Assembly (NCBI RefSeq): GCF_020745735.1
Contig: NW_026867551.1
Span: forward strand, 369,983 to 433,982
Reading direction: 5' to 3'
From: Hemiscyllium ocellatum
Lineage: Eukaryota
DNA length: 64,000 nucleotides
This document shows positions 14,828 through 57,933 of this stretch, in pieces. The position numbers and the translations under genes were made by a program. The notes beneath the pieces are model-generated. The model made no database searches. It was given only the letters and a program-made list of their open reading frames with translations, and was not told where the DNA came from. The first letter of the stretch is position 1. Each line of letters begins with the position of its first letter.

Positions 14828-17323
14828 TCACTGTATATTGTATTTTTTAATAACCTTGAAGCGGTATATGAGAGCATCTTTCAATTGACACCTGAACTTT
14901 GTCTGTGCCACTGCATAAATATATGTAATCGTGCATGGGCGTAAGAGTTGTAGCATATATGCGCTTTCCTACAGAATAAATTTTGGGTTATTGAGAATGG
15001 AACCAATCGACTAGCCGCTGCCTGAAATTTGTACATGGAGAAAATATAAAATGTACAATAGCCATAAACGGAGGAAACTGCCTGAAATGACAAATAATAA
15101 AACGATTGACTTTCTCGTGCTCTGCCTTTCAATGTCACATTTACTAATTTCATTGCTGTTGTTTCGGAGTCTCCTGTGGGCTCTAGTAGCAACTACAATG
15201 TGTCTGACAGTTACTGCATTAATCATTAAAATAAGGAGGAATGAGGGATATGCAGTTTGAATGCGGTTAAACATTTCAAACAATCTCCATGCAACCGATA
15301 TGTAATAGACATCCTGATGCTGCAGTACCAGCCTATTTTATCAATTATATATAAGAGCTCATGCATGAGACAAAATTGAATGTTTATCAAACTGCATAAA
15401 ACACACACTATTCCTATAACTACAGATGCTACTTTTCCTGTGCCGTATTTCGTTTTCAGCTTCTGGTAATAAATGGTTATAAATCGATCAAAGGTGAAAG
15501 CGACAGTCAACCAGGCAGAGCAGTTTCGGGAACAGGAAGTGAGAAGAATTATCAGACGACATCCTGTTGTGGTGTTCAGTAAACTTGCTGACAAATAAAT
15601 TGTCAGAAGCCAACGTAAAATCACTGCAACGACAGTAACCAGGAAATCCATTGTTGCCACTGATACAAGGTATCAAGTGATGCATCCTGAAAGACCACAT
15701 CTTCCTCGGGAAAATAACACTATCGTCACTAGATTGGCCATACAAAACAAAGTGCCATAGAAAATGAGTGATCGGTAGAGAGTCAAATAATCAGAGACAG
15801 CGTCACACAGACAGAGAAGAGCAAAAAAAAATACACTTAATTCAGCAAAAAGACAGCACAGAATTTGTACTATGTATGTTGGATTTAACCAACAAAATCA
15901 ATCTTTTATTCATGTAATTTTAGTGGTTCATTGACAAGAATGTGCATCACAAATAATAATTGAACCAGGATGCGAATTATTTCAGGATCAATATATTTAG
16001 AAACGTACACTTTCGTGTAAATGTAAGGAATGGAGATACATTTCAGACACAAATATTGTAGAGTAGCCATGCTAAAATGTTTACAGAAAGCACGTTGAGT
16101 CATATCTGATCATGGTAAACAATAACGGTAGCCTGAGACACATGAAAAACTCCTCTTCAGCTCAGAGGTCAACGTTCCTTTCTCCAATGTAAGGCCAGAA
16201 TTGGGGCATTCATTTTTGATTGCCCAAAGTTAAATGTCATCTTCAGCTCATCAGATTCTGAAACACAAAAAAATAGCTTTAGGGAAGGTAAGTGGCAAAT
16301 GTTCGTGCCACTCAAGTGCTACGGAATTGCCAGCTGAAACAAAAACAACGCAGTGCATGCTTGCATAGCACACTTGATGAATTCCAATTGTTGCACATCC
16401 TCTGCAAGGCAGAACGTGTGCAATGCAAAGCTTACAAGATGCAGTGAGTTTCAGAAACCATCTTGACTGCACCTCAGGGAAAAGTTGTATCTCACTTGCA
16501 TGTCGCTATATCAATGTCCATTCATTCCTCCAGCAGTAAAAGAGTATAGAGCTTGTCTGTATCATCTACAATACACACAGCAGGAATTCACAATGACCGC
16601 TGCAATAGAACCCTCTGAACCCTGACCATGACGTGAAAGATTAGCAAGAACGTCATATCACTTGGTAGAGCAGCATCTGCAAGGTCCTCTGCAAGCTTCT
16701 TATCATCCTCACTTGGAAACATATTACCTGTCCTTTAGTGCCGCCATTTTTGTACACTGTAACTCTGTCCATTATCGCATTTTGGTGTGCTTGCATAAAA
16801 TGAACAGCATTGATTGAAACTGACAAATTAACACATGAAGACAATCGAGGGCTGGGTAATGCATGCTGACCCCGGTAACTGTGCACACATTTCACAAGAA
16901 GTTTCAAAACGAAGTCTAGAAATGAAAAATGGTCATAAAGGAATCGAGTGAAATACATAAATAGATATGAGTGTGAATATGTCTGTACTAAATATCTGAG
17001 GGAACAAGATTCTTATTGTAAACAGACCATTCGAAAAGAGAATGAACACCATTGATTACCATTGCTCACTGCCTCGGAGAATCAGCTAACTTTATTTCTG
17101 AATGCATGAACAACAAAGCGATGTAAACCTATAACAGTGCTCCACTGATTTGGTTTCAAGTTTATCAAACAAGTATTAATATAATAAAACTTTTTTTTGC
17201 GAACACACGTTTAAATATCATTCTGTCAAATATATTGTATTCCCATAATTTATCTGGTTCTCCGAAAGCTGCAACGGCAGAGCGATAGAGTAAAGCTATC
17301 AGCAATTTTGCAGGAGCATGCAT
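14828..17323 (-). pseudogene. GPR139-like GPCR pseudogene (exon 1 17323-17254; exon 2 15737-14828)
   Basis: Exon 1 MHAPAKLLIALLYRSAVAAFGEP; exon 2 colinear with the intact paralog (ANLVTIVLFSRGRCGLS..FTFDRF..WYC..KSIVLLFVISGSF..IYAVAQTKFR). Lesions: donor GT>AT, acceptor AG>GG, TGA at 15673-15675, 1-nt frameshift near 15314, TAG at 15011-15013 and 14969-14971. Confidence 0.92.
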
Positions 17324-17382
17324 TTCAAATATGAATACTGAATTACTTACACTTGCTTCTGAAGTAAGGATTATGATGCACC

Positions 17383-17390
17383 TTTTTATA
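17383..17390 (-). promoter_or_regulatory. Putative TATA box (TATAAAAA) upstream of the pseudogene
   Basis: Paralogous to 36681-36688, about 60 nt upstream of the ATG. Confidence 0.45.
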
Positions 17391-17449
17391 TTTGATGTTC
17401 ACTACGAGAGACACAATTATTTCTGACCATCGTTTGGACTTCGTACAGT

Positions 17450-17705
17450 TCATACTGACGAAAGACACATTCATACAGTTATCAGGGATGTGTAGACTAC
17501 TTACTCAAGTAACTAGTCTGCATATCCCTGAACACTATTGGCAATTTAGTATTCTCAATTCACCCAAACCTCACATCATTGGGTTGTGAGAGCAAACTGG
17601 AAGACACAAACGAAGAAACGGGGAGAATGTGCAAAGTCAACACAGACAGTTGTCCAAGGCTAGAATCGGCAGAATGTCTAAATATTGAGCCACCATGCCA
17701 CCCCG
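17450..17705 (-). mobile_element. HE1-type SINE, degenerate
   Basis: Reverse complement reads gggtggcatggtggctcaa..ccttggacaactgtctgtgttgactttgcacattctcccc. Confidence 0.75.
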
Positions 17706-23011: not shown

Positions 23012-23560
23012 CCATGACGTGGAGGAGTCGGTGTTGGACTGGATGGACAAAGTTAAAAATCACACAACGCCCTGTCAAAGTCCAACAAGTTTATTTGGGA
23101 AAACTAGCTTTCAGATAGCTGCTTCTTCATCACGTAGCTATGAATCAGGACGATAAGACAGCAATCTTACAGCAAAAGATTGCAGTGTCATGCAGTTGAC
23201 ATAATGTATGGAACAAACCTAGATTTCTGTTACGTGTTTCGTCTTTTCGAATGGATTGCATATTCCGGTTCAGTAATATGTAAATCCCAGAACTTCTTTT
23301 AATTCACTTTTTGAGATAACTTGAGGTTTTATAAAAAGAAATGGTGACATCTCCGCTGAGAAAATGCTTTAAAGGTATGACATTGAGTCTGCCTGTATGG
23401 CAAACTTTAGTCGAAAAGATAATATTTCCAAATTTGAAATAATAAAATATTGCATTCATAATTTTGACGGTGTACAGAAATGTTTGGGATTTAAAAACAT
23501 TTCAACACAGTCTGCATTAGACTTGCATACCTTGAAGAAAATAAAACTCAATCGAAAATG
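23012..23560 (-). mobile_element. Penelope-type terminal repeat fragment with degenerate hammerhead core
   Basis: Minus strand reads gtgatgaagaagcagctatctgaaagctag (core with C3>G; palindromic AGCT helix III). Same family as 13730-13905. No counterpart in unit B at this position. Confidence 0.6.
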
Positions 23561-23802
23561 TGCATCAATAACGTCCATTAAATTATTTTTAAGATTGTAT
23601 TATGCAAAAGGAAGTGATTTCCAAGAATGGCAGAAAGTATTTGTTAGGGTTGAGAGCAATTTCAAGGGAATGAAATTGTGACCAAATATCAGATGAAGGA
23701 AAAGAAAATATGAAAACAAATTAGTGAGACCTGTCAAGACAGACTGTCAGATATTTTACAAGGATAAGTTAAAAGGGTAAATGTAATTAATCCAGATATG
23801 TT

Positions 23803-24112
23803 GGGGCGGCACGGTGTCTCAGCGGTCAGCATTGCTGCCTCACAACATTAGGGGCATGACTTCGTTTCTAAACTTGGGTGACTGTCTTTGCGGAGTGCGC
23901 ACAATCTCCATGCATCTGTGTGGGTTTCCTCCAGGTTCTCTGCAAAAGCTTGCAGGTTAGTTGGATTATCAATTGTCCAAGGATGTTCAGGCTAGTTGCC
24001 TTTGACTTGGGAATTGCAGGGTTGGTGTTGGTCTGGGTCGAACATATTTTGAAATCAATGGCAGAGATTCAATGGGCTGAATTGTCTGCTTCCATAATGG
24101 GGGTATTATATG
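23803..24112 (+). mobile_element. HE1-type SINE
   Basis: ggggcggcacggtgtctcagcggtcagcattgctgcctcac..ttgggtgactgtctttgcggag. Confidence 0.85.
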
Positions 24113-24981
24113 ACATCAGACTCCAGCAGCACCATCCAGTTAACAAAAAGTAATATCGTGTCGATTTACAGACCAATCTAAGCAAGTACTTTGCCTGGCA
24201 TTAATTACTCAATCTGAATTTTTAAAAAAGCATGCAAGTAATCTTTATAAAATATATAATGATGACAAGTAATGAATAATACATATAAATTACCAAATGG
24301 CGCAGTAAGTCTTTTAAAAGAGGAAATCTCACCAGGTTTTCAACTCTGGAACAAAAGTGACTCCAATTCCAAACGATACATTTCTCTATTAAACACCTTT
24401 CAATTTACCCGACCAACATTTCACTTACACTAAAGCTGCAAACCGAATGACGACTTGCATCAAAATGGATTTAGAAAACAGGTTCACATGGTTTGAATAG
24501 CGCATTTTCATACGTGCATGAGTAATTAAACGTGTCTTTGTGTGCAACACTCACACTAAAAGAATACTTCAAAACCCTACAGAATTTGGGAGACTCAAGA
24601 ATTATGAAACAAATGAAAATGTAGAATTGAGATGCAACATGGATTGGCCATGCTACATTTCACGTCGTGTTAGGTGCATTAGTCAGAGGGAAATCGATCT
24701 GCGTGGTGAGTCTTCGGAGGGTCGGTGTGAACTTGTTGGACCGAAGGGCCTGTTTCCGCATTGTAGGGAATCTAATCTAAAAAAATACTGCTGATGGTGG
24801 AAATCAGAAAGATGATAGAAATTGATCTGAAGACTGAGGAGGTCTGGGAGCACCTGTTGAGAGAAATCAGCGTTAACATCTTGGATCCAGTGATGCTTGC
24901 AAATAGCTGATGGAAGTGTTGCTAACTCGGAAGAACGTACGGTCACTTTCAGAGAGAGGCGCTTTTCCTGAGATGAGAGAT

Positions 24982-25691
24982 TGTAACGGCACATATGTCT
25001 ATGATTAGACGACATCTGTGGAGTGTGCTGAGAATTGATAATACGTAAGAAATGCTTGGAGTTATGTTTTGATGAATAGGCAGCAGGTTTGAATTTAACC
25101 AATTATTTTAAAGTATACCTAGGAAACAAAAAAAACCGATTGCATTGACAAGAATGAACCAATCAGTCAGAGACAAATTAGTCAGAGACAACTTCCCATC
25201 GAATCGGAAAGCAGTTGTCATCCGAAAGTTGATCTCAAAGGAAATCTCCCAGAAGGCACCCTCTTTTTTTTAGAGGTAACAAGATACGTTATACAAAGAC
25301 AAATGCTGTAAAGATTAAGAAGTCCCAAGGAGAATACAGATCAATTGGTACCTCGGGAGGAAACAGCAGATTCGGACCACTGGAACAAAGACTGCTTAGA
25401 GACTGGATGAACTTTGAGACTCCAATTTAATGTTTAATAGCTGTCTAATTGGAGCAGCATTTTAATGCGTTTGGAGTCAGATAATGATAAGTTGATAAAA
25501 AGGTAGCTCGGATTTCTCAATAGCTTTAGTTTAGCGTTTAATGTAGATAGGAAATTAAATAGTTAAATTCCCATAAACAGTGGGAATCAAGGGTTTTCTT
25601 TCACTCACTCACATTTAGCAGTGTCCGGGGCAAAGTGAGCTTTTCACGGTGTTTTCAATTAGCGGTGGGACTCAAATTTCAGAACGTTACA
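24982..25691. mobile_element. Putative solo LTR (710 bp)
   Basis: Termini TGTAACG...CGTTACA (TG..CA with a 7-bp inverted repeat); no counterpart seen in unit B; no clear target-site duplication. Confidence 0.4.
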
Positions 25692-25949
25692 ATAACTAGG
25701 AAAATAGTTTTCTGTAGAAGACAGGGTAAGGGAACAGGGTTCGATATAAATAATATGTGGTGAGATAGAGATAGTGAGTCTGAAAACTGAGGAGCAGAAA
25801 AAAAAGTGGATAACGATCAACCCCTAAGTAAATGGGTAACAGCGAATTGGGAATCTTACTGGATAACAATGCTATGTGCATATTTGTAGACTCTGTGATA
25901 ACAAGGGCCTGGTATGTCGGACAGGAGGAAAACGTGGAGAAGTCGTTCA

Positions 25950-26460
25950 ACCACTAGAAGTGTTGAATTCGTTGTTGGTTTCAGAAGGATGTAATGTTCC
26001 CAAACGGAAAATCAGGTTCTGATATTCCAGCTTACGTTGAACTTCGCTGAAGCTCTGCGGAGACGTTGCTCAGGGAACAATGTGCTGTGTTGAATGGCTG
26101 GACAACGGGAACCTCGGGTGTTTGCTTTGTGCGCAGAATGTTTGTTTTTTCGGAAAGAGCTGCACATTCTATGCTTTGTTTCTGCAATGTAGAGAATCCT
26201 ACATTGTGAGTACCGAATACAGAAGACTATACCGGGTGAAATGCAGATAAAGCAGAGCTTCACCTGGAAAATGTGCGTACTACCATAGATTCTGAGAAGG
26301 GAGGAAGTCATAGGCAGGTGCAATGACGCTGTTGCGGTTGCATTGGGAATGGATGACAGTATACTGGCCGGAGTGGTTCTTGTGGAAGGCTGACAAGAGA
26401 GAAGGAAACTGTTTCTGGTGGTTGCATCCATCTGGAGGTAGCAGAAATAATGGCCTATGA
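25950..26460 (-). mobile_element. Penelope-like element fragment (GIY-YIG endonuclease)
   Basis: FQVKLCFICISPGIVFCIRYSQCRILYIAETKHR matches the PLE pattern VYCIxCxxCxxxYIGET; downstream QNLIFRLGTLHP..NNEFN resembles the PLE C-terminus. Confidence 0.85.
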
Positions 26461-29456
26461 TGCTGAAATAATATGCAAATATTAGTCAACACAGTCAGTA
26501 TTGGTAGAGACAGAATCGGCTGCATTTCTTTTATGATCAGTATCGAGGCGATAATTCTTGCAATTCGTATATTTCAGCAGAAGAAACGTGAATTTTCCAC
26601 CGTACTTGAAAACAACATTAATTAGCTCTCTGTAATGATATTTTACCTTATAATTTGTCATACCTGATTGGAGAAATTTGCTTTCCAAAATTTACCTGCT
26701 GCATCTTCAGTAGTAGTGCAATTAAATAACTGTAATGAAGGCACGCCAATGACACTAACATATTTTGAGACTTCGTATGATGTTAGAATCATTACAGCAA
26801 GACAAGAACTTGAAAAATATTCATATTGTAAAATGTAAATCGTGATGCATTCAAATTTCTGAAATTTGTTTAACTTCAGCGCCTGAATACATCAATCAAG
26901 TTGATATTCAGTGGAAAATTGCCCGCGACTGAGATGTTTCATTGACTGTGCAAATATAACATTCAAACCAGAATTTTGACTTTAGAAGGTATTGGCATAT
27001 ATCTTTCAAGTGGTGCCCTAGGAGTGTCATCTTATTTGTATCATCAGCCGATAGTTGCAACATAACCCTTCTTCTGATTTGAACTCAATCTAATATTCTG
27101 CTGTGGTTGCTTCAACACTTCAGTTCAAACTAATGAAACATTCATGAATATACATGTAAAAGTAGAAATCAGAGGCTAGACGATTGAAACAGTTTAAGAC
27201 AACAAACATTTTTTTCGGTATAGAGCGCAGCATTAACACAGATATCCATGCAAATATATCTATTGAGTGCTCTCAGACGTTTCCTTAACTATTATTTCAG
27301 TCTTACGAAATAAAACAAAGTTGATATCTGCACTTTTCGAACTAATCATCAGGAAGTCCATTCGCAAACTACAGTAAAATAGCAAATGTTTCTTTAATAT
27401 TTACTGAATCTTATCCTTCCCTCGCACTCTTTCTGGTCTGACTTCTTTGTCCTCCCTTCTGAATATCATTCGTTGTGTTTACTGGATAACCTGATCTTAA
27501 TTTGCAGTCAACACATTGTCATGAGAGGGATAAAGAAATAACACTGGATATTGTGATTAGCTGGATCATTAATTCACGAGCTGCAATTTACATGACCACT
27601 GACATGACCACCTTCTATATTGTATAATTTTATTTTGTTTATCAATGTTCTTTATTTTATTTCTAAAACAGCGCTCAGATTATTTTGCTCAACATTGCCT
27701 TACTTTACTGTAACTTACAGATCGCTTTAATTTGTCTGTCCACAAATACTGTATCTGTTTTCCACGAATTTTATATTTGAACAGATTCTGGGAAAACCTC
27801 TTTCGTAGCAATTACCAAGCTGCACCAGACCTGGAAGTTCTGATGGGAACAAAGAATAGGGAACTGTGAAATTAATTTGGGTCGATATCCTCTGGGGGTT
27901 CTTTTTGAATAACGTGGAAACTGTTTTGCTTTGTATTTCCCTTGTGTTCGACTACTTCTTCGTTGTTGTTGTTTCAGAGTGTTAGAATTTCAGAATACTA
28001 ATATTCAGATCCTCAAATACACAGACAAAGATGTAAAAAAAAACATCCGAAATTTCAACTGGGTAAATGTTGGATAATTCTATTTCAATGCCAAAATTGA
28101 TTTTTCCTTTTTAAATCAGTCATGAAAGCCAGGAGTGAAATGCGTTGAAGTGGAAGGAGGCAGTGTCCAGCAGTGTCTCAGGGAGAGGTGTGCACCATTG
28201 GAGGTGGAGTGCTTTAATTCTCCCTTCAATTCAATTTTTTGACCACTACCCTGCTTTCCACTTAGTCTTTCATGAAAACATTGTCCTTAACATGCTCTGT
28301 CTGCCACCGATCACGAGCCATATGAATTCACATCAGCAGTTTCAAGTATTTTAAGCAAATATATAATGGGAAGATTAGAAACTCCTCACTTCAGAGGACT
28401 GACTCCGAGCTGGCTGGTCACAGCCAGCACACTGTGAATAGGGGGAAAAATATCAAATAAAATTCCCGAGATAAGGGAAGAAATACTTGTACAAAATCGT
28501 GAAAAATCCATGTAAAAAGATATGGATGTTGAATCCGGTCATACTTCTAATAGGGCAGAGTGGAGTAAGATTAATTAATTTGATGCGGCGTTGAGGGAAT
28601 TGACAAGCTCCAGCTCGTACTGTCATTCGATGAAATCATTACTGATCTTATTTTAACCACAAAACCACTGGTGCATCCACCGCAAAAACGTTTTACTCCA
28701 TTGCTTGCATGTAAGCGCGAATGTGGAATGAACTCTGTTTGATTTTTCCAAAAAATCATCTCGGGCTCAATCGGCAAAATTAAGGTGTGTTATTCTAAAA
28801 CTGCGTACTCAGACTAAAGCGGAACCGTTTAAGTTAAAACCAATTACAGTTGTGTGGCCCACATGTCAGTTTCAATACTTCGGCCAGCCCTGACGATCTC
28901 TGACGCCATGACTGAATGCAAGAAAACATTAAAAAAATCAAAAGAAGTTTTTTTTTGCAATGATAGCGCTTTGCTATGTCTGTGTTTTACTGATTTTAGC
29001 ACCGTGTCACACTGATGACTTAATCTACTGTTTCAATCTTGCATAGACATTCACACTTAAAAAAAAACAAATCCTTGTTCGAGTTAGTGCTGAGCAATCG
29101 ATCATTTTACTTCGATTTATTTGTCATGTGTGGTCAAGTATAGAAGTACAAGAGTACAGAGAAAGTTGTCTAATCTTACCACGCATGACGCTAACTTAAG
29201 TACCAAGTACCGTGATAAAAAAGTATGTACAAAGTATTGAGGGAAACAAGAATTTTAAAGGTTATGTTTTTCTTCACATAATATAAGAAAAATATAAGAA
29301 ATCAGTAAGAGTTAACGTTCTCGCAATTCAAACTGCGGTAACAAAGGAAAACATTAAAAGTTCCACCATTTATCTTGCTCTGCTGTCTGTTCTCAATGCC
29401 ACTGCCACACGTAAAGTGGCTGCTGCTGAAACTGTCGCCTTTCCGATTATAAATTA

Positions 29457-29487
29457 CTGATGAAGGGCTGATTCCTGAAATGTCGAT
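29457..29487 (+). ncRNA. Minimal type I hammerhead-ribozyme-like motif in a Penelope-derived fragment (29457-29530)
   Basis: CUGAUGA-AGGG cugau UCCU-GAAA-UGUC. Core nucleotides and the GUC site are intact; helix I is poor, so activity is doubtful. Confidence 0.45.
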
Positions 29488-30429
29488 TAATCTACTACTC
29501 GGATGTTGTTTTTCCTGCATGTGCAGTCCACGTTTGTCCTCGCCGATCCAATCACCGCTGATGCCTGTGGCACATACTCAGGCAGGATCCACTCGCATGC
29601 CGAGCCGAGAGACTCCCATGAGTCGCCAAGAGAAGAGGCTGAGGGCCGCCGAGAGACCAGGCTGGGCGATAGCACACAGAGGCCATAAGCAGAGCCGTGG
29701 AAAGACCAAATGCGGGGTAATGACAAACCAAAAGCTAGAAAAAAAGTGAAGGAAACAGAAGGAACGGAAGAGCTCCCTTACGAACATCCTACCATGCCGC
29801 TTTTCAATTAGATTATCACCTTCATCGTATTAACGGGGACTGCTGCTTCTGTCACATTCTGAAGTCAGGAGCAATGATCCCCAGTTTGATGGATTGTTGA
29901 GAACAGCGAAATATGTTTGATCTCAGCACTCTGAGGATGTCTTGTTTTGATAACATGTGGTAGAGATGATTAAGCTTTAGTAATTACTCTCATTTGATGT
30001 ATTTTGAATTTTTTTACTCCCCATCTCCAAAATTCGAAAGTGGACAAGTTCATGAATTAAAAATGCCACAGCTTAATTTTGATAGAAAGTAGTTTCATAC
30101 AAACGATTCTTTTGTTTGTCCTACTTCCTTAAGGGACTTTGTGAAAAAAAGTGAATAAGGTGAGACGAAGTTATGAGTGTATTTGATGCAATATCTCGCT
30201 TCATGTCATGAAAACTGCAAAGATTTCTACTTCTGCTGGCGAAACGTTGTCAGTGCAGTACTGTGAAATGTGAAAGATCATGTAATGATATAAATGGATC
30301 AGATATTTAAAAATGCAATTTTTTACTGTTTCTCTTGTCAAAAACTGTGAGTCATTAGTGATTTTAAGTGAAGTGAGACAGCCAAGTAATAAGGAGTCAT
30401 TAAATTAATGTGGCTGGAGGCTGGGAACC

Positions 30430-33400
30430 AGATGAGAAGATAAGTAGACAGCGAGGTGGAAACTGGAGACTATAAGTATCATGACGATAACATTAATAAG
30501 GGGTAAAGTAGCCAGAGAGGAGATTAATGCAAAAGAACTGGTAGGCTGAAGTGCACATAATCTAATGCAAGTAGTATAGTGGGTAAGGCAGATGAACTGA
30601 CGGCTTGGATTGGTGCCTGGGGGTCTGATATTATTACAATCACAGAGATTTGTTTCAAGCAAGGGCGTGATTGCAACTAAATCTTCCAGGATGGAGATAC
30701 TTCAGATAGGACAATGATGAAAGTAAAAGGTGGAGGGAGCTGTTGTTATGCTGCTCCGGGATGATATCACGACTGTGCTAATGGAGAACATGATGGAGGG
30801 CTTGTGTAGTGAGACGTTATGTGTGGATCTGAGAAATAAAAAGGGTTCAGTTACGTTGTTGGGGCTGTATTACAAGCCTCCCAACAGTGAGCGGGATGTG
30901 AAAGAACAAATAGGTAAATCAATCATGTCGAGTCAACAGGGTGATGGTGATGGGAGATTTTAATTTTCCCAACATTCACTGGGATACAATTCGTGTCAGA
31001 AGTCTGGTTGGGGCAGAATTTGTAAAGGCGTCCAGGAGTGTTTTTTAGGGCAGTACGTCAATCGTCCGATCAGGGAATGGCGATATTGGACTTGGTGTTG
31101 GGGAAAGATAATGGGCATGTAGTAAAGGTTGCGGTGCGGGATTTATTTGGGAAGAGAGACCACAATTCTGTAAGTTGATTATACTTGTAGACAACGATGA
31201 GAATGCTTGTCAGGGAAGAGTAGTAAACTGGGCCAGGTGTAATTATATCAAAATTAGTCAGGGGCCGGGAAACGACAGTTGGACACATCGATTTGAAGGG
31301 ATTTCCACATTTGATGTGTGGGAGGCTTTCAAAGATAGGTTAAAGAGAGAGCAGGATAGGCATGTCCTGTTTAAAGCAAAGGATATGAAAGGCAAGGTTC
31401 GTGAACTGTGGACGAGAGGAGAAATCGGACGAGCGGCCAAGTGGAAAACGGAAGTGGGAGTAGCTCCAGGCACCTTAGAACAGAATGGACCCAGGAGGAT
31501 TATAGAGAGAGTAGGACCAGTCTTTAACGAGGAGTCAAGCGTTTTAAAACTGGTCTTGAAATAGCTTTAGTGAGCAGAATTAAGAAAAATCCCAAAGCCT
31601 TTTAATTTTATATAAGAATCAATGGGCAACTAGAGAAATAATTGGTCCACTAAATGTTAGAGAAGGATTACTGTGTGTCGAACCTGAGAAAATGGGTAAG
31701 ATTCTGAATTATTACTTTGCATCAGTGTGCACTAAGGAGAGGATCATCGTGAATGTTGAGATTAGAAATAGAGGTTTGATTTCTCTGGATCACGTTGACA
31801 AAATGAGAGAAGATGTGTTGGGCATTCTAGAGGTTTTCACGGTGTGCGAATCCCCAGGACCGAAGAGGATCCATCCCAGGTTGCTGAGGAAGGTGAGAGA
31901 GGAAATAGCTGGGGCCGTGACAAATATCTTTGTAGCATCCTTAAATACAGGTGAGATGTCTGAGAACTGGAGGGTTTCTCGTGTTGCACCCTTGTACAAA
32001 AATGATTATAAGGCTATTCCGGGTACCTGCAAATCAGTGATCCTGAACTCAGTGGTGGGCAAATTGCTGGAGAAAATACTGAGGGATAAAATCGATTTTT
32101 ATCTGGAAAGAAATGGGTGAACAGTGATTGGCAACGTGGCTTTGTGAGGAGGACATCGTGCCTTACCAAGTTAATAGAGTTCTTTGAGGAAGTGACCAAG
32201 TTGATAGATGAAGGAAGGGCTTTAGATGTCATGTGCATGGACTTTAGGAAGGCGTTTGATAAAGTTCCTCGTGGTAAACTAATGGTGAAAATGAAGTCAT
32301 AAGGTGTTCCAGCTAGGTGGATCAAAAAATTATTTAGCAATAGGTGACAGTAGTAGTAGAAGGGAGTTTCTCGAAATGGAGAAAGGTGGCCAGTGGTGTT
32401 CCACAGGGATCAGTGCTGGGGCCACTATTGTTTAGGATATACTTAAAATGATCTGGAAGAAATTAATGTTCGTATGATCAGCAAATTTGCAGATTACATG
32501 CAGATTTGTGGAGTAGCAGAAAGCATAGGGGACTGACAAAGAATACAAGAGTACAGAGATAGACTGGTGTGTTGGGCGGAGAAGTTCCAAATGGAGTTCA
32601 ATCCAGGCAAATATGAGGTGATGCATTTTGGGAAGTCTAATTCTCGAGCAAATGAAGCAGTAAACGCGAGAACCTTAGTAAAAGTTGATGAGCAGAGAGA
32701 TCTGGGTCGATTGTTCCTGAAGGTTGCCGCACAGTTGGAGAGAGTAATCAAGACGGTATATGGTATGCTTACTTTCATCGGACAGGTTATTGAGTATAAG
32801 AGCTGTCAGGGTATGTTAAAATTGTACACGGAATTGATTCGGCCCCATTTAGAATTTTGGGTAGAGTCCTGCTGGCAACATGTCCAAAGGAGATAGACAT
32901 TTTGGAGACGATGCAGAGATGGTTGACGAGAATGTTGCTGGGAATGGAAGTTGCTAGTTATGAAGAGAAGTTGAGTAGGTTAGGATTGTTTCCATTAGAA
33001 AACAAGGAGATTGAGGGGTTTGATGTGATTGAGTTCGACAAAATCTTGAAGGGTACAGACAGGTTTAGATAGAGATAAGCTTTTTCACATTAAATAACGT
33101 AGTAGTTGAAGGGAGTTTTTCGAAGTGGAGAAAGGTGACCAGTTATGCTCCACAGGGATCAGTGCTGGGGCAACTTGTAACCTTTCTCCATTTCGAGAAA
33201 CTCCCTTCAACTAATACGTTATTTCAATAACGTGAGGTCACGCTTTGAAGGTGAGATGTGCAACGTTTAAGGGGAATGCACGCGGTAAGTATCTGGAACG
33301 CGTTACCCGCAGAGGTAGCAGAGGCAGGCATGGTAGATTTACATAAGATGCTTATGGACAGATGCATGGGCAAGTGGGGAGCAGAGGAATACAGATGCGT

Positions 33401-33505
33401 AGGATTAGCTTGACACATTTGGACAATGGATTTGAATCGGAGGGCCGGGAGGACCAAAGAGCCTGTTACTGGGCTGTAAATTTTCTTTCTTCTTCTTTGT
33501 TCTTC
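30430..33505 (+). mobile_element. Decayed CR1 LINE, ORF2 region (APE endonuclease + reverse transcriptase) and 3' end
   Basis: Fragments [105 protein letters not shown]; many stops and frameshifts. Confidence 0.93.
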
Positions 33506-33837
33506 ATTAATACTTACTCAGGGCAAAACAGTACAACGTCTCAATTTCTGAAATATTTTTGTTTATTTCTTCTCAGAGCAGGAATATTTACTCGCACTAT
33601 TTAAAACAACAGAATTTTAATAACTGCCTCAACGCGTGATGCTTGACAGATGCAAATGAAATTTAATCCGATCCTCTTCGAAGATATTTCAGAAGTAAGA
33701 AACCCCTTATAACAAACCAGAATGTGAAATTGAAGTATGTATGTTTATTTCTCTCACCATCAGCAGAAACGGCAATCTTGATTTGCATGTGTGCATTTCT
33801 GCAAAATTTAAAAACAAAATAAGCTTATTATTTGTTA

Positions 33838-33843
33838 TTTATT
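33838..33843 (-). terminator. Candidate polyadenylation signal AATAAA of the intact GPCR
   Basis: Minus-strand AATAAA about 305 nt after the stop; a second lies at 33744-33749. Not evidently conserved in the paralog. Confidence 0.25.
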
Positions 33844-34147
33844 TTAACACAGACTACAGTGGGTATCTACCAAGGGGAGTTTGCACACGCATCAATAAAC
33901 TCCATTTCAAAAGATAATCTTATGGTGAACCTATGTGGCTGGCAGAAGAGGCAAAAACTTGAGAAAAACTTTCTTTCACAAAGGACTGCCACGAATTTGT
34001 AAAGCAGTGTTGTGTCTGTCACTGGCAAGAACTAACAAGCCTAGGCAGAGTGATGATACATATGCCAAAATTTCCCAGCTGAAGATTCGTAGTGTTGTTA
34101 GTAGGTTGAGTGAACTGTCAATGTCATATCAAATTATTGATCCGGGT

Positions 34148-35058: not shown

Positions 35059-35131
35059 CTGTAAGAGACAGAGTACGATAGAAAATCAGTGTGAGAGGGA
35101 GACATCGAGACAGACAGAGACAGACCTTCGG

Positions 35132-46684: not shown

Positions 46685-46689
46685 TAATC

Positions 46690-48744: not shown

Positions 48745-51700
48745 CTCTGATCCAAGCAAATCCTGCAATAACTCTTTCCGAGGCCTTCCAAACCGTCCAG
48801 ATCCACCCTTATATCCAACTGCAGTGACCGGGTGTCTGGCACGAGGTCGGGCTCTGAGGCTCAGAAAGGAAAGGGGGAGGGGGGAGAATGCTAGTTATCG
48901 GAGACTCTATAGTTAGAGGGACAGACAGGCGGTTCTGTGGACATGGGGAGACTCTTGGATGGTTTGTTGCCTCTCGGCTGCCAGGGTCTGAGACGTCTCG
49001 GACCGTGTCTTCAGAATCCTTAAGAAGGAGGGTGTGCAGCCAGAGGTCGTGGTGCACATTGGCACCAACAACATAGGTAGGAAGAGGGGTGGGGAGGTAA
49101 TTCAGGAGCTCAGGGAGTTAGGCTGGAAGCTAAAAGCTAGGACGGACAGAGTCGTCATCTCTGGATCGTTGCTGGTGCCACGTGCTGCAAGGATGGAGGA
49201 CTTCACGTTTTTGGACAATTGGACTGCATTCTGGGGAAGGTAGGAACTGTACAAGCAGGACCGTTTGCACCTGAACCAGAAGGCACCAATATTCTGGGAG
49301 ATAGGTTTGCTAGCACTCTTCGGGGGGATTTAAACTAATTTGGCAGGGGGGTGGGATCCGGATTTGGAGTCCACCAAGTAGGTTAGCTGTTTTTAAGGAT
49401 GTCCAAGAATGTAGGGAGGATGTGGAGAAGGTAGCAATGACAGGGAATACTCCGGACACAGAAATGGTCTCAAATGTGAATACTTCAACGAAAGGAGTAT
49501 CAGAAATAATGTGGGTGCGCTTAACGATGGATCAGTGTTTGGGATTATGATGTTGTGGCCATCACGAAAACGTGGATATAAGAGGGACAGGAATGTTTGT
49601 TGGGGGTGGGGTGGTAAAAAATGGAGGGAGGGTGGCTTTGCTAATTAGAAATGTTATAACGGCTGCAGAAAGGCGGTTCGAGAGGGATATGCCTTTGGAG
49701 GTAGTATTGGCTGAAGTCAGAAATACGAAAGGAACAGTCACCTTGTTGGGTGTTTTAGATAGGCCCCCGAATAGCAGCAGAGATGTGGAGAAACAGATTA
49801 GGAACCGGGGCAAGTGATGGGCTAGTTAGTGGGTGAGCATTTTGGTGATGGTGACTACAATTCTGAGACATTCACCTTGGTTATGGGGAGAGATAGGTGC
49901 GTGCAACAGGGCAGGTTTTACAATTGGGGGAAGGGTAAATACGATGCTGCAAGACAGGATCTGAGGAGCATAAATTGGGAGCATAGGCTGTCAGGGAAGG
50001 ATGTTGTTGAAATGTGGAACTGTTTCAACAAACAGATACGACGTGTCCTTGATATGTATGTACCAGTCAGGCAGGAAAGAGATGGTCGTGTGAGGGAACG
50101 TTGGTTGACGAGGGAGGTTTAATGTCTTCTAAGGAGGAAGAAGGAGGCTTAATAAAGTTGTGGAAACAAGGTTCTGACAGAGCGTTGGAGGGATACAGAA
50201 TAGCCAGGAGGGAGCTGAAGAAACGGATTAGGAGAGCTAAGAGAGGGCATGAAATATATTTGGCAGGTAGGATCAATGATAACCCCAAGGCCTTTTATGC
50301 AAATGTCAGAAAAATGAGAATGACGAGAACGAGGGTAGTTCCGATCAAGGACAGTAATGGGAGACTGTGTAATGAGTCGGAAGAGATGGGAGAGGTCTTC
50401 AATGAGTACTTTTCAGTATTTGCAAATGAGAGAGACCGTATTGTTGAAGAGGAGAATATGAAACGGACTGGTAAGCTAAAGGAGCTACTTGTTAGGAAGG
50501 AAGATGTGTTGGGTATTTTGAAAAACTTGAGGAAAGGCAAGTACCCCGAGCCTGATGGGATATATCATAGGATTATGTGGAAAACAAGAGAGGGAATTGC
50601 AGAACCGGTGGCAATGATCTTTTCTTCTTCACTGTCAATGGGGGTGGTGCCAGAAGACTGGAGAGTGGCGAATGTTGTGTCACTGTTCACTAAAGGGAAT
50701 AGCGGTGACCCCGGGAATTACAGGCCAATTCGACTTACATCAGTGACAGGCAAAGTAATGGAAAGGGTACTGAGGTATAGGATTTATGAGTATCTGGAAA
50801 GACACTGCTTGATTAGGGACAGCCAGAACGGATTTGTGAGAGGTAGGTAGTGGGAAGTTTGGCCAGTTGGATAGAAAACTGGCTAACCGGTCGAAGTCAG
50901 AGAGTGGTGGAAGATGGTAAATATTCAGCCTGGAGCCCAGTTACAAGTGGAGTTCCGCAAGGATCAGTTCTAGGTCCTCTGCTGTTTGTAATTTTTACTA
51001 ACTACTAGGAAGAGGGAGTCGAAGGGTGGGTCAGTACATTGGCAGACAATACGAAGATTGGTGGAGTTGTGGATAGTGAGGAGGGTTGTTGTCGTTTGCA
51101 AAGGGACTTAGATATGATGCAGAGCTGGGCTGAGGAGTGGCAGATGGAATGCAATCCGGTAAAGTGTGAGGTTGTCCATTTTGGAAGGACAAATAAGTAT
51201 GTGGAATGTAGGGTTAACGGTAGGTTCTTAGTAAGGTGGAGGAGCAGAGTGATCTTGGGGTCTACGTTCATAGATCTTTGAAAGTTGCCACTCAGATGGA
51301 TAGAACGAGTGAGAAGGCCTATGGTGTGTTAGCGTCCATTAGCAGAGGGATTGAATTCAAGAGTCGTGAGGTAATGTTGCAGCTGTATAGGACCTTGGTA
51401 AGGCCACATTTGGAGTACTGTGTGCAGATCTGTTCGTCTAAGTTTCGGAAATATGTGGAAGCTTTGGAGAGGGTGCAGAGGAGATTCACCAGGATGTTGC
51501 CTGGAATGGAGAATAGGTCGTACGCGGATAGGTTGAAGAGTGCAAGGCCTTTTCTCATTGGAACGGCGAAGGATGAGGGGTGACTTGATAGAGGTTTATA
51601 AGATGATCAGGGGAATAGATAGAGTAGACAGTCAGCGACTTTTTTTTTCCCCGGGTACAACAGAGTGTTGCAAGGGAACATACATTTAAAGTGAAGGGTG

Positions 51701-51920: not shown

Positions 51921-53930
51921 ACTTTGACCCTTTATTAAAGGCATATTAGGGATCCTCTTAGCCTTCATAATTCCGTGCTAACTTCCTTCCTAATTTCTCC
52001 ATACTCCTCAAGGGCTCAATCAAATTACGGCTGCATGGACCGATAGTGTGTTTCATTTTCTTCCTTTTGGCTAAACCAACAATTTCCCTCGCCATTGCTA
52101 TCCTTCAGTTTTACAGGCACAGATGTATCCCACACTTTAACCGACTGTCTTTAAAAGCCACCCACATGCCAGCCCTTGATTTGCATTCAAATAACTGCTC
52201 CCAATCCACTTTTCCCAGTTCTTATCGAATTTGAAAGTAATTGCGCCTTGACAAATAAGTCACTTTTGAAATGCTATCGAGTTGTAAACTCACCCTTTCT
52301 GGGTTGAATCTCATTTCCCCCAGGTCTTTTCATTTGAGCAATCGATTGGTATTCTCGAGCAGTGTCCTGCTATCAACTTACGTAGTTGTCACAAAAATAT
52401 TTTCCTGTTATCAACACCTTTCTTTTGTCTTACCTCCTATATTTAATTACCAAGAAACAACAATGGACACAGCACGAAAATGAAGAAATCTCTGTCTGTT
52501 GAGGAAGGTAAATGACAACCTTTAAAAATGTCTTGGACGACCACTTGAAGTGACATAACTTTCAACATTAACAGTTAAGAGCGGGGAATCAGAATTTACA
52601 GGTGTTTGGTTATTTTTATTGGTACATATTCGATTGTCCAAAGGGTCTTTTAAGCACTGTAAGATTCTGTCATTCTATGGCACAGATTAGCTGGAACGGA
52701 GATTTGATAGTTTCAGTGAGTGAGCGAGAAAGAAGTAGTTTGTGCCATGTAACCTAGACAAATGTAAGACTTTGTTCATTCGTGCCAGTCTTGAATGGTT
52801 TTCAGTGCACTGTTAGATTTTTAGACGGTCACCAAGTTCTAAATCTCGATGAAGCACCACACATTCATATTTATCTGTCTCAACGTTTTTTTTATTATTC
52901 TATTCAAAGTATTTAAAAACCTCAGATCACTTAAATTCACCCTGCGTTTGTGTTATTACATTCCATCGCCTTTGAACCCCTGCTTTCCCGCGTACATTCT
53001 GGTGAATCAACGTTGCATTCAAATGAACACCGATTGCCAATTCCCACTCTTAATTCCCTTTTCTGATTTAAAATTCAATGACAATACTTGGCTAACATCA
53101 CCCCCTGTTTGCAGATTAAAAGATGTTTCACAGTTTGCGCCGATCCCAGCTTCCTGCTGATGAACTCCAGCTGGAAAGGAGCCAATCCTTTTGCAAAGTT
53201 AGACTGAGAAAGTGCAATATCAACGAAATATTTCAATGTGAAACTGAATGCGGTAATGGAGAAGGCATCTGCTTCGGACTACAATTCTATTAGCGGTCGA
53301 GAAGGATAAATGTGTAAAAAGATGATTTCATTGATTCGACCTTGCATTGCTGAATTGACCGTTTGTTTGCAGAATATGGCTAACTGAGCTGCAAGGGATA
53401 CACAAGTTTCGATCGATGAAGATAGAAATTGCAAAATCTCTTTAAACTCACTACCCTTAAATGATGGAGTGTTTCGGCAGCGCCTCACTTGCAATCCAAA
53501 TTTGTAATCGACAAAGTAATAGTAACTTACACAATATGCCATGTTATGTTTACCGCTCAATTTCTGTCATATAGATATTTTTTCAGTACCTGTCAGAGTT
53601 TTAAACCGAAAGCAAGAAGATAAAACTGTTGTATCTTCACGTATTGTGCTGGGAAAAATAAATCAAAATGATCAGCAAATTTTAAATCAAATGTTCTGTA
53701 CCCTACAAATTTGATTTCGTCGTTTGTTGATATTCGTGAGTACGTGAGCATTCATGTTCGAGAGTGAGTATGACTGTGAGTAAATATATGCGATTGTGAG
53801 CGAGTGAGAGGTTGTGGTTTAGTTGATTTGAGTGAATGTGTTTGAATGTTTGTAAAATGAATCTGTATAATTGTGTAATTCTGTCAGTTCGTGAGTTTCT
53901 AATGCCCTATAAGTGAACGCCTCTTTGAGA

Positions 53931-53931
<1 letters not shown>

Positions 53932-53966
<35 letters not shown>

Positions 53967-53983
53967 GTGTGTGTGTGTGTGTG
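53932..53983 (+). repeat. (GT)n microsatellite
   Basis: About 25 GT units with one GC interruption. Confidence 0.95.
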
Positions 53984-55325
53984 CAAGCTTGTGTGAGTGA
54001 CTGCATCGTTGCCAAAGCATGACAGTGCGTTTGCTCATGTGGGTGTGTGTGCATGAGAGACGGAATGAGTATGTATGTTAGGCTACGTATTTCTATGTCT
54101 ATGTCCGTGAAGGATAAAACTCCTAAGGAGTTCATCGAAACGAAAAATTAACCTGAGAGGGAGTAACAACACTTTCTCATGACTGTGAAAAAAATCTCGT
54201 GGCCATGATTGGTCATGCAATGTTTGTCCTCCAAATTATTGACTTACCGTCATGTTGCACTTCTGGTATCATAAACCTGAAGGACCACAACAATGAATAA
54301 ATTTCCACCATCTTGAACAGAAGTGTTCTGTTCCTTTTCTTTATTCTTCCCACAACATGAATCACCTTTCACCACATTATATTCCAACTGTAGTTCTTAA
54401 TTATTAACTACTATGATGTAGATGGAAAAGAAAGTGATATGATGGGATGTAGCCAGCTCATTTATATTCAATACTTTCATATTGTTATGTTATAATATCT
54501 AGCGAGAAAACTGCCTTCCATCATAAACAAAAACTCACGAGGACTGCAAATATAGATTGGAAATGGAGTGTGATTTTAATATGTCAATCAGTTAGCTTGA
54601 AATTCCTTGCTATATTTGGACAGCCATGCATATTATTTTGCACAGGGCAAATATTAAACCAAGAATTTTCGAAGAACAACAAACGAGGTAATTGTGGCGA
54701 AAGCAGATGAGTGCCAGTGAGCAGTCCTCCTGGTGAGCAAATTGTGCTGGGTGGTTCCCTTGATGACCCTGCATACCTTTTTTTGACAAATTAGAACTAA
54801 CTGTTGAAGCGTTATTAATTGTTTTTGACAGTATTAAAAAATGACCTGTGATATTTGGGCATAGCTATCTGACCATAATTGACCGAAAATGCCAGGAGGG
54901 AGGGAATTGCCTGCATGACGGGCAGGGAAAAACTGGTTTTCATAAGCAAATAGATGCCAGCGTTGTAGTTGGATCATAGAAGCTTTGTTTTAGACACGTC
55001 AGGTTTTGGAGAACACTACCACAGGGACAATACTTTTTGGCTCATTTCCTTTGTGAAGCTATTGTGTTCAGATGGCACGTGACGTGAATGAACTTGACTA
55101 AGTACTGGATGGGCATATTATAAAATCATGATATTATGTTTTTACATATGTGCATTTTTATGATCTTCCCGGATGGCCTATTAGCATTTGTTATATTTAG
55201 TGAACACTGGCTTATTTTCGAAGCATTGGATGAAAATCAAATTGATCTGAGTATATTCATTGAACAGTTGTAAATAGTGTTCGTGATGATGTAACTTGAG
55301 TTTGCCAGAGGAGACTTCTTGCTTG

Positions 55326-55332
55326 TATATAT
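55326..55332 (+). promoter_or_regulatory. TATA-like element (TATATAT) upstream of the + strand GPCR exon 1
   Basis: About 65 nt upstream of ATG 55398, similar to the spacing at the - strand genes. Confidence 0.3.
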
Positions 55333-55397
55333 GGACGATGGCTTCCACTGCCTCAGCAGTACATCAGCTGTGACAAGATTTCGTACTATTACAGAAA

Positions 55398-56720
55398 ATG
55401 GGAAAACCAACACTTATTTTGATTAAAGAATTGTATTATTCGATTGTGGGAGCCATCGGTGTGCCTGGTGATTTAGTTTATTTTGCATTCTTAACATGTA
55501 TAAATTGACTCTCTTCTTCAATGCTCTAAGTACAGAATAAGATAATACATTTGTGCAAAGTCGCAAATACCAGATGCAAAAATAGACAATACTGGAAAGA
55601 TGCTGCCAGCATTCGTGAAGAGAACAATTAACTTCATGTGACTGATGTATTGACTCTTTGCAACAATTTCGGTTTTCTTTTCAGATTTCCACTTTATTCG
55701 GGTATTTATGTTTTATTTGAGCTGTTATTATTGTTTGCTTAATTTGGCCATCCCTTGCTTTTCAGTTGACTTGTAATTGAATCAGACTGAGTTTTAGTAG
55801 AATAATTGGAGTGCATTACTTATCACGCAGTTCCTTTCTGAAGAGTCTGGTTTATAACAGATTCGTGGGAGGTGTGTTTCATAGACTATTGTTTTGAAAG
55901 TAATCCTCTTCATATACAGTATTTTGTATTCATCTGATTGCGGGCATATTTTCTGTACAGTTAAATCCATTAAAATTTTCCACAGGCGAAGGAACATTAC
56001 CAACTGTTTTGAATTTTTATAGCGAACCTGCTGACAATTGCGATTCTTTTCCGAGGAAAATGCGCTCCTTCCAAGTGTATCTCTGTCTACATGATGGCCA
56101 TGGCAACGGAAGATCGACTGGTCGTGCTGAATAATGAATTAATATACTATATTTTCAGTCACTACTTTCCAACTTCATTCCTATTGCAGACCTCGGTTTG
56201 TTACTCTGTTTTCATGACGGGACTTACTCTTGAATGCTCTGTTTGGTTCACTTGACTTTCGACCGATTTGTGGTGATCTGCTGCGGAAAGTTTAAGACAA
56301 AGAACGGCAGTCGTGTTTGTTACAATTCTCACTCTCCTTGTCGTTTTGAGAGACGCCCCAATTTCGCTTTCATTTGTTCCTGAGATGACAATTAACAAAG
56401 TACAGTGGGGGTGTCGGGCAAAGGCATCTTACTTCTCCTCAGATTTTGGTGAAGCATTTGTCTGGTTTCACAACGCACCCCTCATTTGGTTCCACTTCAT
56501 TTTGATTACCACGTTTAACTCTTTAACTTTCAGAAATATTGTATTGAGCAGTTGATCCAGAAGAAGTTTTTACAGTCATAACAGTGAGAATCAGAGCAAT
56601 GCTGACATGCAGAACCGAAAGAAATCCGTCATCCTGCACTTCGCTATTTCAAGCAGCTTTATATTGTTGTGGATGACACATGATTTGACAATGGTAACGA
56701 AAAAACTGACAAACAACACT
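55398..56720 (+). pseudogene. Divergent GPR139-like GPCR pseudogene, 3'-truncated (exon 1 55398-55467; exon 2 from 56023)
   Basis: Exon 1 MGKPTLILIKELYYSIVGAIGVP G|gtgatt; acceptor tttttatag|CG AAC CTG. Then ANLLTIAILFRGKC..MAMATED..SVWFT, frameshift near 56250, LTFDRFVVICC, small deletion near 56300, QWGC, TGA at 56553-56555, NRKKSVILHFAISSSFILLW. Homology ends near 56720, before TM7. Confidence 0.88.
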
Positions 56721-57040
56721 TTGATTGTTGTGTTGACAATGATTGGAAGTGCAGGGAATGTAAGTAATTGAAATAGGAGGGCTGATAAAGATTTTAATGA
56801 ACACGAATGCAGCGTTGTCCTCACTCCTGGCGACAACTGTCAAAACTTTATTGCATGTATCGTTGAAAAATAAAGTCCCCAAAGGACGCATTTTTGCTTT
56901 CAATTGAAGAACAGCCGCATCATTCATTAGGGCAAAATATCATTTCATTGGGGAAGTTCAGAGAAATTCCAGAGGGTGATCCCTGTTGAGGAACTATTAT
57001 CTTTTCAGCAAAACAAAAACAGCTTGAAACGTTCCACATT

Positions 57041-57933
57041 ACAGATCTACTGGTCATGCTCAATAATGGATTAATACACGATATTTTCAGTTACCACTTA
57101 TCAACCTCATTCCTCTCGCAAACCTCTGTTTGTAAATCCATTATATACATGACTAGAATTACTCATGATTATTCCATTTGTTTCACAGTTTCCTTAACTT
57201 TTGATCGATGTGTGGTGATCTGCTGCCGAAAGTTTAAGATGAGGTACTGCAGTGAAAGAATACCGTCGTGGTTATTAAAATTATCATTCTTCTCGTCTTT
57301 TTGAAAGACGTCCCAATTTTGCTTGCATTTTATCCTGAGATAGCAATTAATAAAATAGAGTGGGGATGCCAGGCAAATGCATTTTTCTTCTCCTCAGATT
57401 TTGGTGCATCTTCTGTTTTTTTTTCACTGAGCTTCCCTCATTTGGTTCCCTTTCATTTTGATTACAACGTTTAACTCTTAAAGATTGTATTGAGCAATCG
57501 AGCCAGAAGAAGAATTCAAAGACGTAGCAGTGAAAATAAGAGCGATGCCGAGATGCAGAACTGAAAGAACTCCATCAACTTCCTCTTCGCTATTTCAAGC
57601 AGTTTGTATTTGTTATGGTTGATACATGCCGTGACATTAGTATCAACCAAACTGAGAAACATCATTTATTACCGAGGCGATCGCACAGACCCAGGACACA
57701 TCGCCAGTGAAGTGACAGCTCTCCTGAGATATTTTAGCTCTTCTCTGAACTTGTGGATTTATGCAGCGACCCAAAATGCATTCTGTGGACAAGTGAAAAA
57801 TTCATTACTGCTGCCCCGTACGTTGTTTGTCAGATTTATTAGAAAATCAGGACAAAAAGACACGAAAATATGTAAATCAACTTCGTCTTTTAAAAATAGC
57901 TTAAATTTTAAGGCATTTCCGTTATTGAAGTGA
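57041..57933 (+). pseudogene. Second divergent GPR139-like pseudogene, 5'-truncated (TM2 to C-terminus)
   Basis: TDLLVMLNNGLIHDIF..FTVSLTFDRCVVICCRKFK..IEWGC..FAISSSLYLLW..SSSLNLWIYAATQNAF. Frameshifts near 57262 and 57420, TGA at 57562-57564. Closely similar to 56110-56720. Confidence 0.88.

Follow-up and report, generated by a model that had tools for sequence, protein, structure and literature searches.

A 64,000-nucleotide stretch of the Hemiscyllium ocellatum genome (RefSeq assembly GCF_020745735.1, contig NW_026867551.1, positions 369,983 to 433,982 of the forward strand; hereafter the window, numbered from its first letter) holds several copies of a receptor gene, most of them broken, and an earlier note on this DNA had read them as a birth-and-death cluster of GPR139-like receptors that might sense amino acids or peptides. 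The locus raises the question of what these receptors are, from which ancestor they arose and what they may detect. The best explanation, which we favour with moderate confidence as a whole, is a birth-and-death tandem cluster of a greatly expanded family of class A G-protein-coupled receptors (GPCRs), with one working and three dead copies and an origin in an ancient orphan receptor. The structural and evolutionary part of this account is very probably right; the sensory role of the family is a more tentative matter and is weighed last.

Receptor copies and tandem units

The 335-codon open reading frame (ORF) at 34148-35155 on the minus strand served as tblastn query against the window, which is free of N runs, and a family hidden Markov model (HMM) was built from 79 full-length relatives. 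The tblastn search returned four copies of a two-exon class A GPCR gene:

14831-15771, minus strand: copy 1, 64-69% identity, E 6e-101
34151-35155, minus strand: copy 2, the query itself
56022-56717, plus strand: copy 3, 32% identity, E 4e-29
57044-57804, plus strand: copy 4, 30-35% identity, E 6e-24

The family HMM found the same four copies and no further significant match in the window, in agreement with the count given in the earlier note. The ORF of copy 2 encodes a rhodopsin-type protein with seven transmembrane helices (7TM; Pfam 7tm_1, E 1.4e-18, score 67.8 bits with the cutoff at 30.5), and its two exons (36635-36566 and 35058-34148), joined across intact GT/AG splice sites, give a product of exactly the 326 amino acids that had been modelled earlier. 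The gene models are the following:

36566-36635, minus strand: copy 2 exon 1, 70 nt, 23 codons plus one base (MHIPERAPIFLLYYSALAAFGVP; MHIPER...GVP), donor G/GTAAAT
35059-36565, minus strand: copy 2 phase-1 intron, acceptor ...ctcttacag/CC, with cttacag at 35059-35065
34148-35058, minus strand: copy 2 exon 2, stop included, open frame from the end of transmembrane helix 1 (TM1) through helix 8
17254-17323, minus strand: copy 1 exon 1 (MHAPAKLLIALLYRSAVAAFGEP), frame open, donor GT changed to AT (GAT for GGT)
14828-15737, minus strand: copy 1 exon 2, a pseudogene whose acceptor AG is now GG and whose frame is broken by stops at 15675, 15013 and 14971 and by a shift near 15314
55398-55467, plus strand: copy 3 exon 1 (MGKPTLILIKELYYSIVGAIGVP plus G), donor GTGAT
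56023-56907, plus strand: copy 3 exon 2, pseudogene of MG-type (MGKP), in-frame stops at 56253, 56274 and 56553, at least three frame changes, terminal stop at 56907
56990-57933, plus strand: copy 4 exon-2 pseudogene, with stops at 57472 and 57562 after a frame change at 57268

Only one copy is intact, as had been claimed: copies 1, 3 and 4 each carry stops and at least one frame change, and copy 1 has lost both splice sites as well. Copy 4 has neither exon 1 nor a promoter and begins about 80 nt past the copy 3 stop, at the equivalent of the exon 2 start; at the nucleotide level it is 75.6% identical to copy 3 (57043-57667 versus 56111-56721, period about 932 bp), and we therefore consider it an exon-2-only tandem duplicate. 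Duplicates of this type could in principle serve as alternative 3' exons of one exon 1; copies 3 and 4 are both dead.

Copies 1 to 3, like five genes of other species (Stegostoma, Heptranchias, Leucoraja), have an exon 1 of 70 nt followed by a phase-1 intron, which upholds the fixed exon 1 size and intron phase of the earlier description. Copies 1 and 2 are sisters in the tree (support 100), as are copies 3 and 4 (support 97), and the two pairs fall into separate clades; the division into two divergent subfamilies lying head-to-head, MH.. type on the minus and MGKP.. type on the plus strand, is therefore correct. At 5800 on the minus strand of the Stegostoma locus L001 there is a second family exon 1 (MHATLTGLEFAIYYAVIAAVGVP, donor GTAAG), on the strand opposite the P0002 gene and about 2.3 kb away from its promoter, so that head-to-head pairs exist in Stegostoma too.

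Self-comparison of the window places the minus-strand copies in repeated units:

7626-17449, minus strand: tandem unit 1, carries copy 1; self-blastn, collinear blocks 65-75% identical to unit 2
23463-36746, minus strand: tandem unit 2, carries copy 2; homologous to unit 1 and collinear with Stegostoma L001
448-4191, minus strand: partial third tandem unit; matches 27096-34014 of unit 2
53378-53494, minus strand: possible TM7/helix-8 relic (..ILQFLSSSIETC..); HMM E 0.51, best E 0.13 among 16 family queries, not significant

The unit is old and 10-19 kb long; between units 1 and 2, identity amounts to 65-67% in flanks and intron and to 75% in the coding exon. In the collinear Stegostoma locus L001 this unit recurs about every 10.9 kb, and the array is therefore older than the split between the Hemiscyllium ocellatum and Stegostoma lineages. 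The third unit retains the immediate 3' flank of the receptor gene (3930-4191 matches 33744-34014), and neither the HMM nor tblastn detected receptor sequence in 4192-7625, the 3.4 kb beyond this flank, so that we regard it as a site where the gene was lost or eroded. This unit may or may not be the fifth site with a lost gene that had been proposed earlier, as it lies outside 14828-57933; within that range the only candidate is the non-significant relic at 53378-53494. The proposal of birth-and-death tandem evolution with a high pseudogene load holds, as the window combines an old tandem duplication with a single intact gene, three pseudogenes and one site of loss.

A (CA)n microsatellite at 53819-54135, read as HTHTHT… ORFs, adjoins the possible relic. 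Two plus-strand stretches, 31175-32896 and 50101-51583, carry degenerate reverse-transcriptase ORFs of LINE (long interspersed nuclear element) type, with sequence like …NYRPIRLTSVTGKVMERVL… and a strongly positive GC skew, and such ORFs make up much of the spacer between the receptor genes; Pfam searches with the LINE-like and other ORFs of the window gave no match at E<=0.01. Three further stretches (7508-7858, 9661-9762 and 53624-53728) resemble the receptor weakly, but with inconsistent order and E above 0.04 we dismissed them as noise.

The intact copy and the extent of its family

Comparison of copy 2 with the Stegostoma gene at L001 gave a nonsynonymous divergence (dN) of 0.13, a synonymous divergence (dS) of 0.48 and an omega of 0.27, and the exon is 83% identical between the two species while the intron and flanks are about 70% identical. 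Judged by these values, copy 2 is predicted to be a working two-exon gene under purifying selection. The AlphaFold model of its product (predicted local distance difference test score, pLDDT, 89; predicted template modelling score, pTM, 0.84) has seven helices plus helix 8 and a beta-hairpin in extracellular loop 2 (ECL2). All the microswitches of class A receptors are present, namely D54 (D2.50), C83 and C162 (TM3-ECL2), D107-R108-F109, W249 (W6.48) and N294..Y298 (N7.49..Y7.53), and each of them is either invariant across 36 family members or conserved in at least 90%; copy 2 has Thr in place of both P6.50 and P7.50, a family-wide variant. Altogether, the 7tm_1 match, the 7TM model and the full set of microswitches identify copy 2 as a class A (rhodopsin-like) GPCR, which, with D2.50, the TM3-ECL2 cysteines, DRF, W6.48 and N7.49..Y7.53 kept, would act as a G-protein-coupled receptor.

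A database search with exon 2 of copy 2 returned 1679 clusters at E<=1e-3. The best 120 are elasmobranch without exception and 57-79% identical to the query; 'probable G-protein coupled receptor 139' is the automatic name of nearly all of them, and Heterodontus francisci alone supplies about 31. When one representative was kept per 50%-identity cluster, the search gave 923 matches at E<=1e-3, a Callorhinchus-type UniProt entry included, and 103 at E<=1e-30. The family is thus very large, in line with the expansion proposed in the earlier note, and cartilaginous fishes appear from these counts to have expanded it to hundreds of genes per genome. A literature search found no paper on a GPR139-like gene expansion in cartilaginous fishes.

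The clade of copies 1 and 2 is well conserved and contains proteins of Heterodontus, Stegostoma, Amblyraja, Mobula and Pristis; its shark and ray proteins P0003, P0005, P0006 and P0007 share 75-86% identity among themselves and 64-69% with copy 2, the closest kin of which are in Chiloscyllium (79%) and Stegostoma (76%). The clade of copies 3 and 4 is deep-branching, with proteins of Rhincodon, Heptranchias, Heterodontus and Hypanus. Database names within the family are inconsistent: MG-type members in Hypanus sabinus (P0183 and its cluster) are auto-named 'vasopressin V2 receptor-like' and some Heterodontus members 'GPR15-like'. The Heptranchias locus L005 holds an MG-type array with exon 2 copies at 3393-4278, 9932-10822 and 32181-33071 on the plus strand, one of them frameshifted, and the annotated gene P0281 of this locus looks like an annotation chimera: over 23 kb it connects part of the middle copy with the last copy.

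Relation to GPR139 and origin of the family

Taken alone, copy 2 matches human GPR139 weakly (39 bits, with GPR52 at 36 bits). A profile of 36 family members has GPR139 as its best solved receptor (80 bits, E 1e-21), 21 bits ahead of NTSR1 (59 bits), and a Foldseek search with the copy 2 model ranked the GPR139 structure (PDB 7VUG) first; among the Swiss-Prot matches of that search GPR139 had the highest identity (20-22%) and the lowest root mean square deviation. The family shares with human GPR139 and GPR142 the class A fold, a non-proline residue at 7.50 (NTCIY in copy 2, NFFLY in GPR139), an aromatic residue at 3.33 and W6.48. In contrast, identity to human GPR139 is about 21-25%, or 20-23% in structural alignments, well below that of an orthologue, and the shark family has hundreds of tandem copies and a much shorter N-terminus. 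Mammalian GPR139 and GPR142 are single-copy genes. On these similarities GPR139 is clearly the nearest characterised receptor, albeit a distant one, and we would place the family in a wider GPR139/GPR142-related group without equating it with GPR139. The earlier name 'GPR139-like' is therefore apt in so far as GPR139 is the best solved match, but not in the strict sense of GPR139/GPR142 identity, given the low identity and the Tyr found at position 6x51.

Arg244 at 6x51 has been reported only in GPR139 and GPR142, where it is critical for activation, and it contacts the carboxylate of L-Trp or L-Phe in a docking model (PMC8807744). The corresponding residue in copy 2 is Tyr252, and across 116 family members the position is Tyr in 89, Phe in 5 and Asn in 5; it is His in copies 3 and 4, and Asn, Ala or His in the MG subfamily. 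Residues E108, H187 and N271 of GPR139 are replaced by Thr, Glu and Tyr in copy 2, and F109 by Tyr, with W241 kept. With Tyr for Arg 6x51 in copy 2 and in most members, the chief structural argument for aromatic amino-acid sensing falls away, and this part of the earlier proposal is weakened. Deep in the pocket, position 3.36 is Arg in 80 of 118 members and 5.42 is Asp in 80 of 115, with Asp or Glu frequent (residues 94 and 178 of copy 2); such a charged pair might take over the role of the lost Arg 6x51.

The nearest proteins outside cartilaginous fishes are from a salamander (32% identity), the coelacanth (30%) and a teleost (29%); they match 7VUG with 53-70 bits and none is a true GPR139. 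A careful maximum-likelihood (ML) tree was rooted on amphioxus and nemertean 'GPR139' genes. It places the amphibian genes as sister to the chondrichthyan clade (100/99), with the coelacanth and teleost proteins as the next branch, and recovers the chondrichthyans as one clade with moderate support (88/54; a single clade in 90% of the bootstrap trees). The salamander gene belongs to a set of single-copy orthologues that are 66-74% identical among salamander, frogs and caecilian; its sturgeon match is 46% identical, and the next matches after sturgeon are members of the shark family at 32-33%.

This amphibian and sturgeon orphan (Pleurodeles XP_069092602, Xenopus tropicalis P0298, Acipenser P0314; auto-named 'probable GPR139') resembles the shark receptors in the WLTVAFTFDR(F/Y) motif, the SS.(S/T)N..IY motif of TM7 and a short N-terminus of (F/Y)YP..(A/S).(F/V)G.PA design. 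It differs from them in being single-copy and highly conserved, in its sequence (32-33% identity) and in having P6.50 and Lys at 6.51, a position that is Arg in the coelacanth, teleost and amphioxus genes. Orphans of coelacanth, gar and teleosts have been grouped with GPR139/GPR142 and named GPR210A/B (PMC6504862). In our tree they may correspond to the clade that unites P0244 (coelacanth) with P0253 (teleost). The P0244/P0253 clade is the next sister group of the family and also has GPR139 as its best match (70 bits); unlike the family, it keeps Arg 6x51 and has Ser at 6.48 and a low copy number.

We consider it very probable that the shark family descends from one GPR139-related orphan gene of early jawed vertebrates. 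This gene remained single-copy in amphibians and sturgeon and seems to have disappeared from amniotes; in the cartilaginous-fish lineage the basic residue at 6x51 was lost and the gene underwent a massive expansion.

What the family may detect

To locate variability within the receptor, 117 family members were aligned to copy 2, with helix limits taken from the AlphaFold model. Mean entropy is 1.67 bits over the outer 12 residues of TM2-7 and the ECLs, and 1.04 bits over the inner halves and the intracellular loops (Mann-Whitney p 4e-9). The outer half is the more variable one in all helices, ECL3 reaches 2.18 bits and ECL2 1.73 bits, and the pocket positions 3.29, 3.32, 6.54 and 7.38 are among the variable ones. 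As variability is greatest in the outer helix halves and loops, the members probably recognise different small ligands; in the mechanism that we propose, each would do so through its own outer half and loops. The very short N-termini and extracellular variability that the earlier note had pointed to are likewise seen here.

The MH-type genes share a promoter block, which in the window takes the following form:

36679-36717, minus strand: copy 2 block, TAATTG, 2 nt, TCTCCAGTGG (O/E-like), 10 nt, ATATAAATAGG (TATA); 44-82 nt upstream of the ATG
17402-17419, minus strand: copy 1 block, TAATTG, 2 nt, pyrimidine/purine O/E-like element, about 10 nt, ATATAAA

The resemblance of the block to the Lhx2/Ebf composite motif is judged by the general homeodomain (TAATTG) and O/E (TCCCNNGGGA) consensus, as no composite consensus is spelled out in the paper of Monahan. 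The pattern TAATTGNNYCYCNNGKRG, which was derived from copies 1 and 2, occurs at two places in the whole window, upstream of these copies only, and it also matches Stegostoma L001 at 8046-8063, directly upstream of the gene, which is an independent match. The layout of copy 2 is found again in Stegostoma L002 (TAATTGGCCCCCAGGAG...ATATAAA) and Heptranchias L003 (TAATTGTCTCACTGGGGG...GTATAATA), and the block is conserved in part in Leucoraja L004; an MG-type Heptranchias gene has TCTCACTGGGG...TATATAAAAGG at -112 to -75, without TAATTG. Because the MH-type genes have the homeodomain, O/E-like and TATA elements in common, the block suggests expression in one common cell type, in which it would drive these genes.

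Chemosensory repertoires typically arise by extensive tandem expansion within one lineage and contain a high proportion of pseudogenes, and both features are found here. Like the repertoires of odorant receptors (ORs) and trace amine-associated receptors (TAARs), the shark family forms large tandem birth-and-death arrays with many pseudogenes and a variable outer pocket. As in OR repertoires, there is a shared proximal promoter with a homeodomain site beside an O/E-like site, an arrangement reminiscent of the Lhx2/Ebf logic described for the promoters and enhancers of odorant receptors (PMC5608512, PMC7804114). In contrast to ORs and TAARs, to which it has no sequence affinity, the family has two coding exons with an intron inside TM1, and its TATA promoter lies immediately before the coding exon and contains a degenerate O/E-like site. 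On this pattern the family may be an external chemosensory repertoire, expressed in olfactory or another sensory epithelium, a reading that is plausible and that we put somewhat below an even balance; the remaining probability is split among internal or immune roles. The more specific possibility that the family is the missing large odorant-type repertoire of cartilaginous fishes, a class A group outside the OR, TAAR, V1R and V2R families that arose from a GPR139-related orphan and would be expressed in sensory neurons from a homeodomain and O/E promoter, seems to us rather unlikely.

Several points weigh against an external sensory role or limit the account as a whole. The 75-86% conservation within the copy 2 clade fits a fixed ligand better than it would a fast-evolving odorant receptor. 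Outer-half variability is common to most GPCR paralogue sets and is therefore weak evidence for chemoreception, and as three of the four copies are dead the window itself says little about function. The promoter pattern, scored on the two copies that supplied it, is partly circular, and its O/E-like element is degenerate. The trees are built without true GPR139 or GPR142, as the family, amphioxus and amphibian-kin searches returned none (the matches being family members or amphioxus, nemertean or amphibian kin), and the position of the family relative to these receptors rests on profile scores and not on a tree. Four sequencing runs contain copy 2 with even depth over the gene, intron and flanking or intergenic sequence and without a splice joint, from which we conclude that they are DNA; two possible RNA runs contain none of its sequence words. 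In the catshark sensory-organ study 'The Sensory Shark', no GPCR is among the top olfactory genes and the receptor family is not mentioned (PMC11979771).

The strongest competitor is an internal signalling or immune-cell repertoire, in which the receptors would serve neuromodulatory, endocrine or leukocyte sensing of peptides or metabolites. The closest characterised relatives of the family are brain and endocrine orphans (GPR139, GPR142) and then peptide receptors (NTSR1, GHSR, galanin receptors), EBF-type sites are active in B cells too, and both the conservation of the copy 2 clade between sharks and rays and the single-copy, conserved state of the amphibian orthologue are as expected for an endogenous ligand. 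However, hundreds of tandem paralogues with many pseudogenes would be unusual for receptors of endogenous ligands, and the pocket positions are variable; we consider this role doubtful, though one to be reckoned with.

It is improbable that the receptors sense aromatic amino acids or peptides in the manner of GPR139 and GPR142, with the ligand bound as in GPR139. GPR139 as best solved match and the shared non-proline 7.50, aromatic 3.33 and W6.48 speak for such a mode of binding, but copy 2 and 89 of 116 members have Tyr in place of R6x51, which is critical in GPR139 and reported only for GPR139 and GPR142 (PMC8807744), H187, N271 and E108 align with Glu, Tyr and Thr, and identity stands at about 21-25%.

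Contigs from other individuals (the four DNA runs) differ from the coding sequence of copy 2 at three synonymous and five nonsynonymous sites (within 34185-34860 and at 36619), with no stop. The nonsynonymous variants are R6K, T90I (pocket position 3.32), T165K, F168L and Y315C, and T165K removes an NIT glycosylation site in ECL2; some of the eight differences may be cross-mapped paralogues. That the whole cluster is decaying, with copy 2 a recently silenced gene or chance survivor, would agree with the three dead copies, the unit without its gene, the five nonsynonymous against three synonymous differences and the lack of RNA support among the runs examined (those with the gene being DNA), but it is very improbable in view of a frame open over 326 codons, intact GT/AG, ATG and TATA promoter, the omega of 0.27, an exon better conserved (83%) than the neutral DNA around it (about 70%), a complete set of microswitch residues and variants none of which is a stop.

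The preferred explanation, a birth-and-death cluster of a greatly expanded class A family, thus retains from the earlier interpretation the mode of evolution and the size of the family; strict GPR139/GPR142 identity falls away, and amino-acid sensing is weakened. Cartilaginous fishes are known for keen chemical senses. They have very few classical odorant receptor genes, and V2Rs predominate in the repertoire described for them (PMC6368271). An obvious candidate to fill this gap would be the present class A family, of what appear to be hundreds of tandem genes per genome, which databases mislabel as "GPR139"; alternatively, the family may bring to light a novel form of diversified internal sensing. 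As the shark family is very probably co-orthologous to the single-copy gene of amphibians and sturgeon, one frog gene set beside many shark genes offers a tractable comparison for de-orphanising these receptors.

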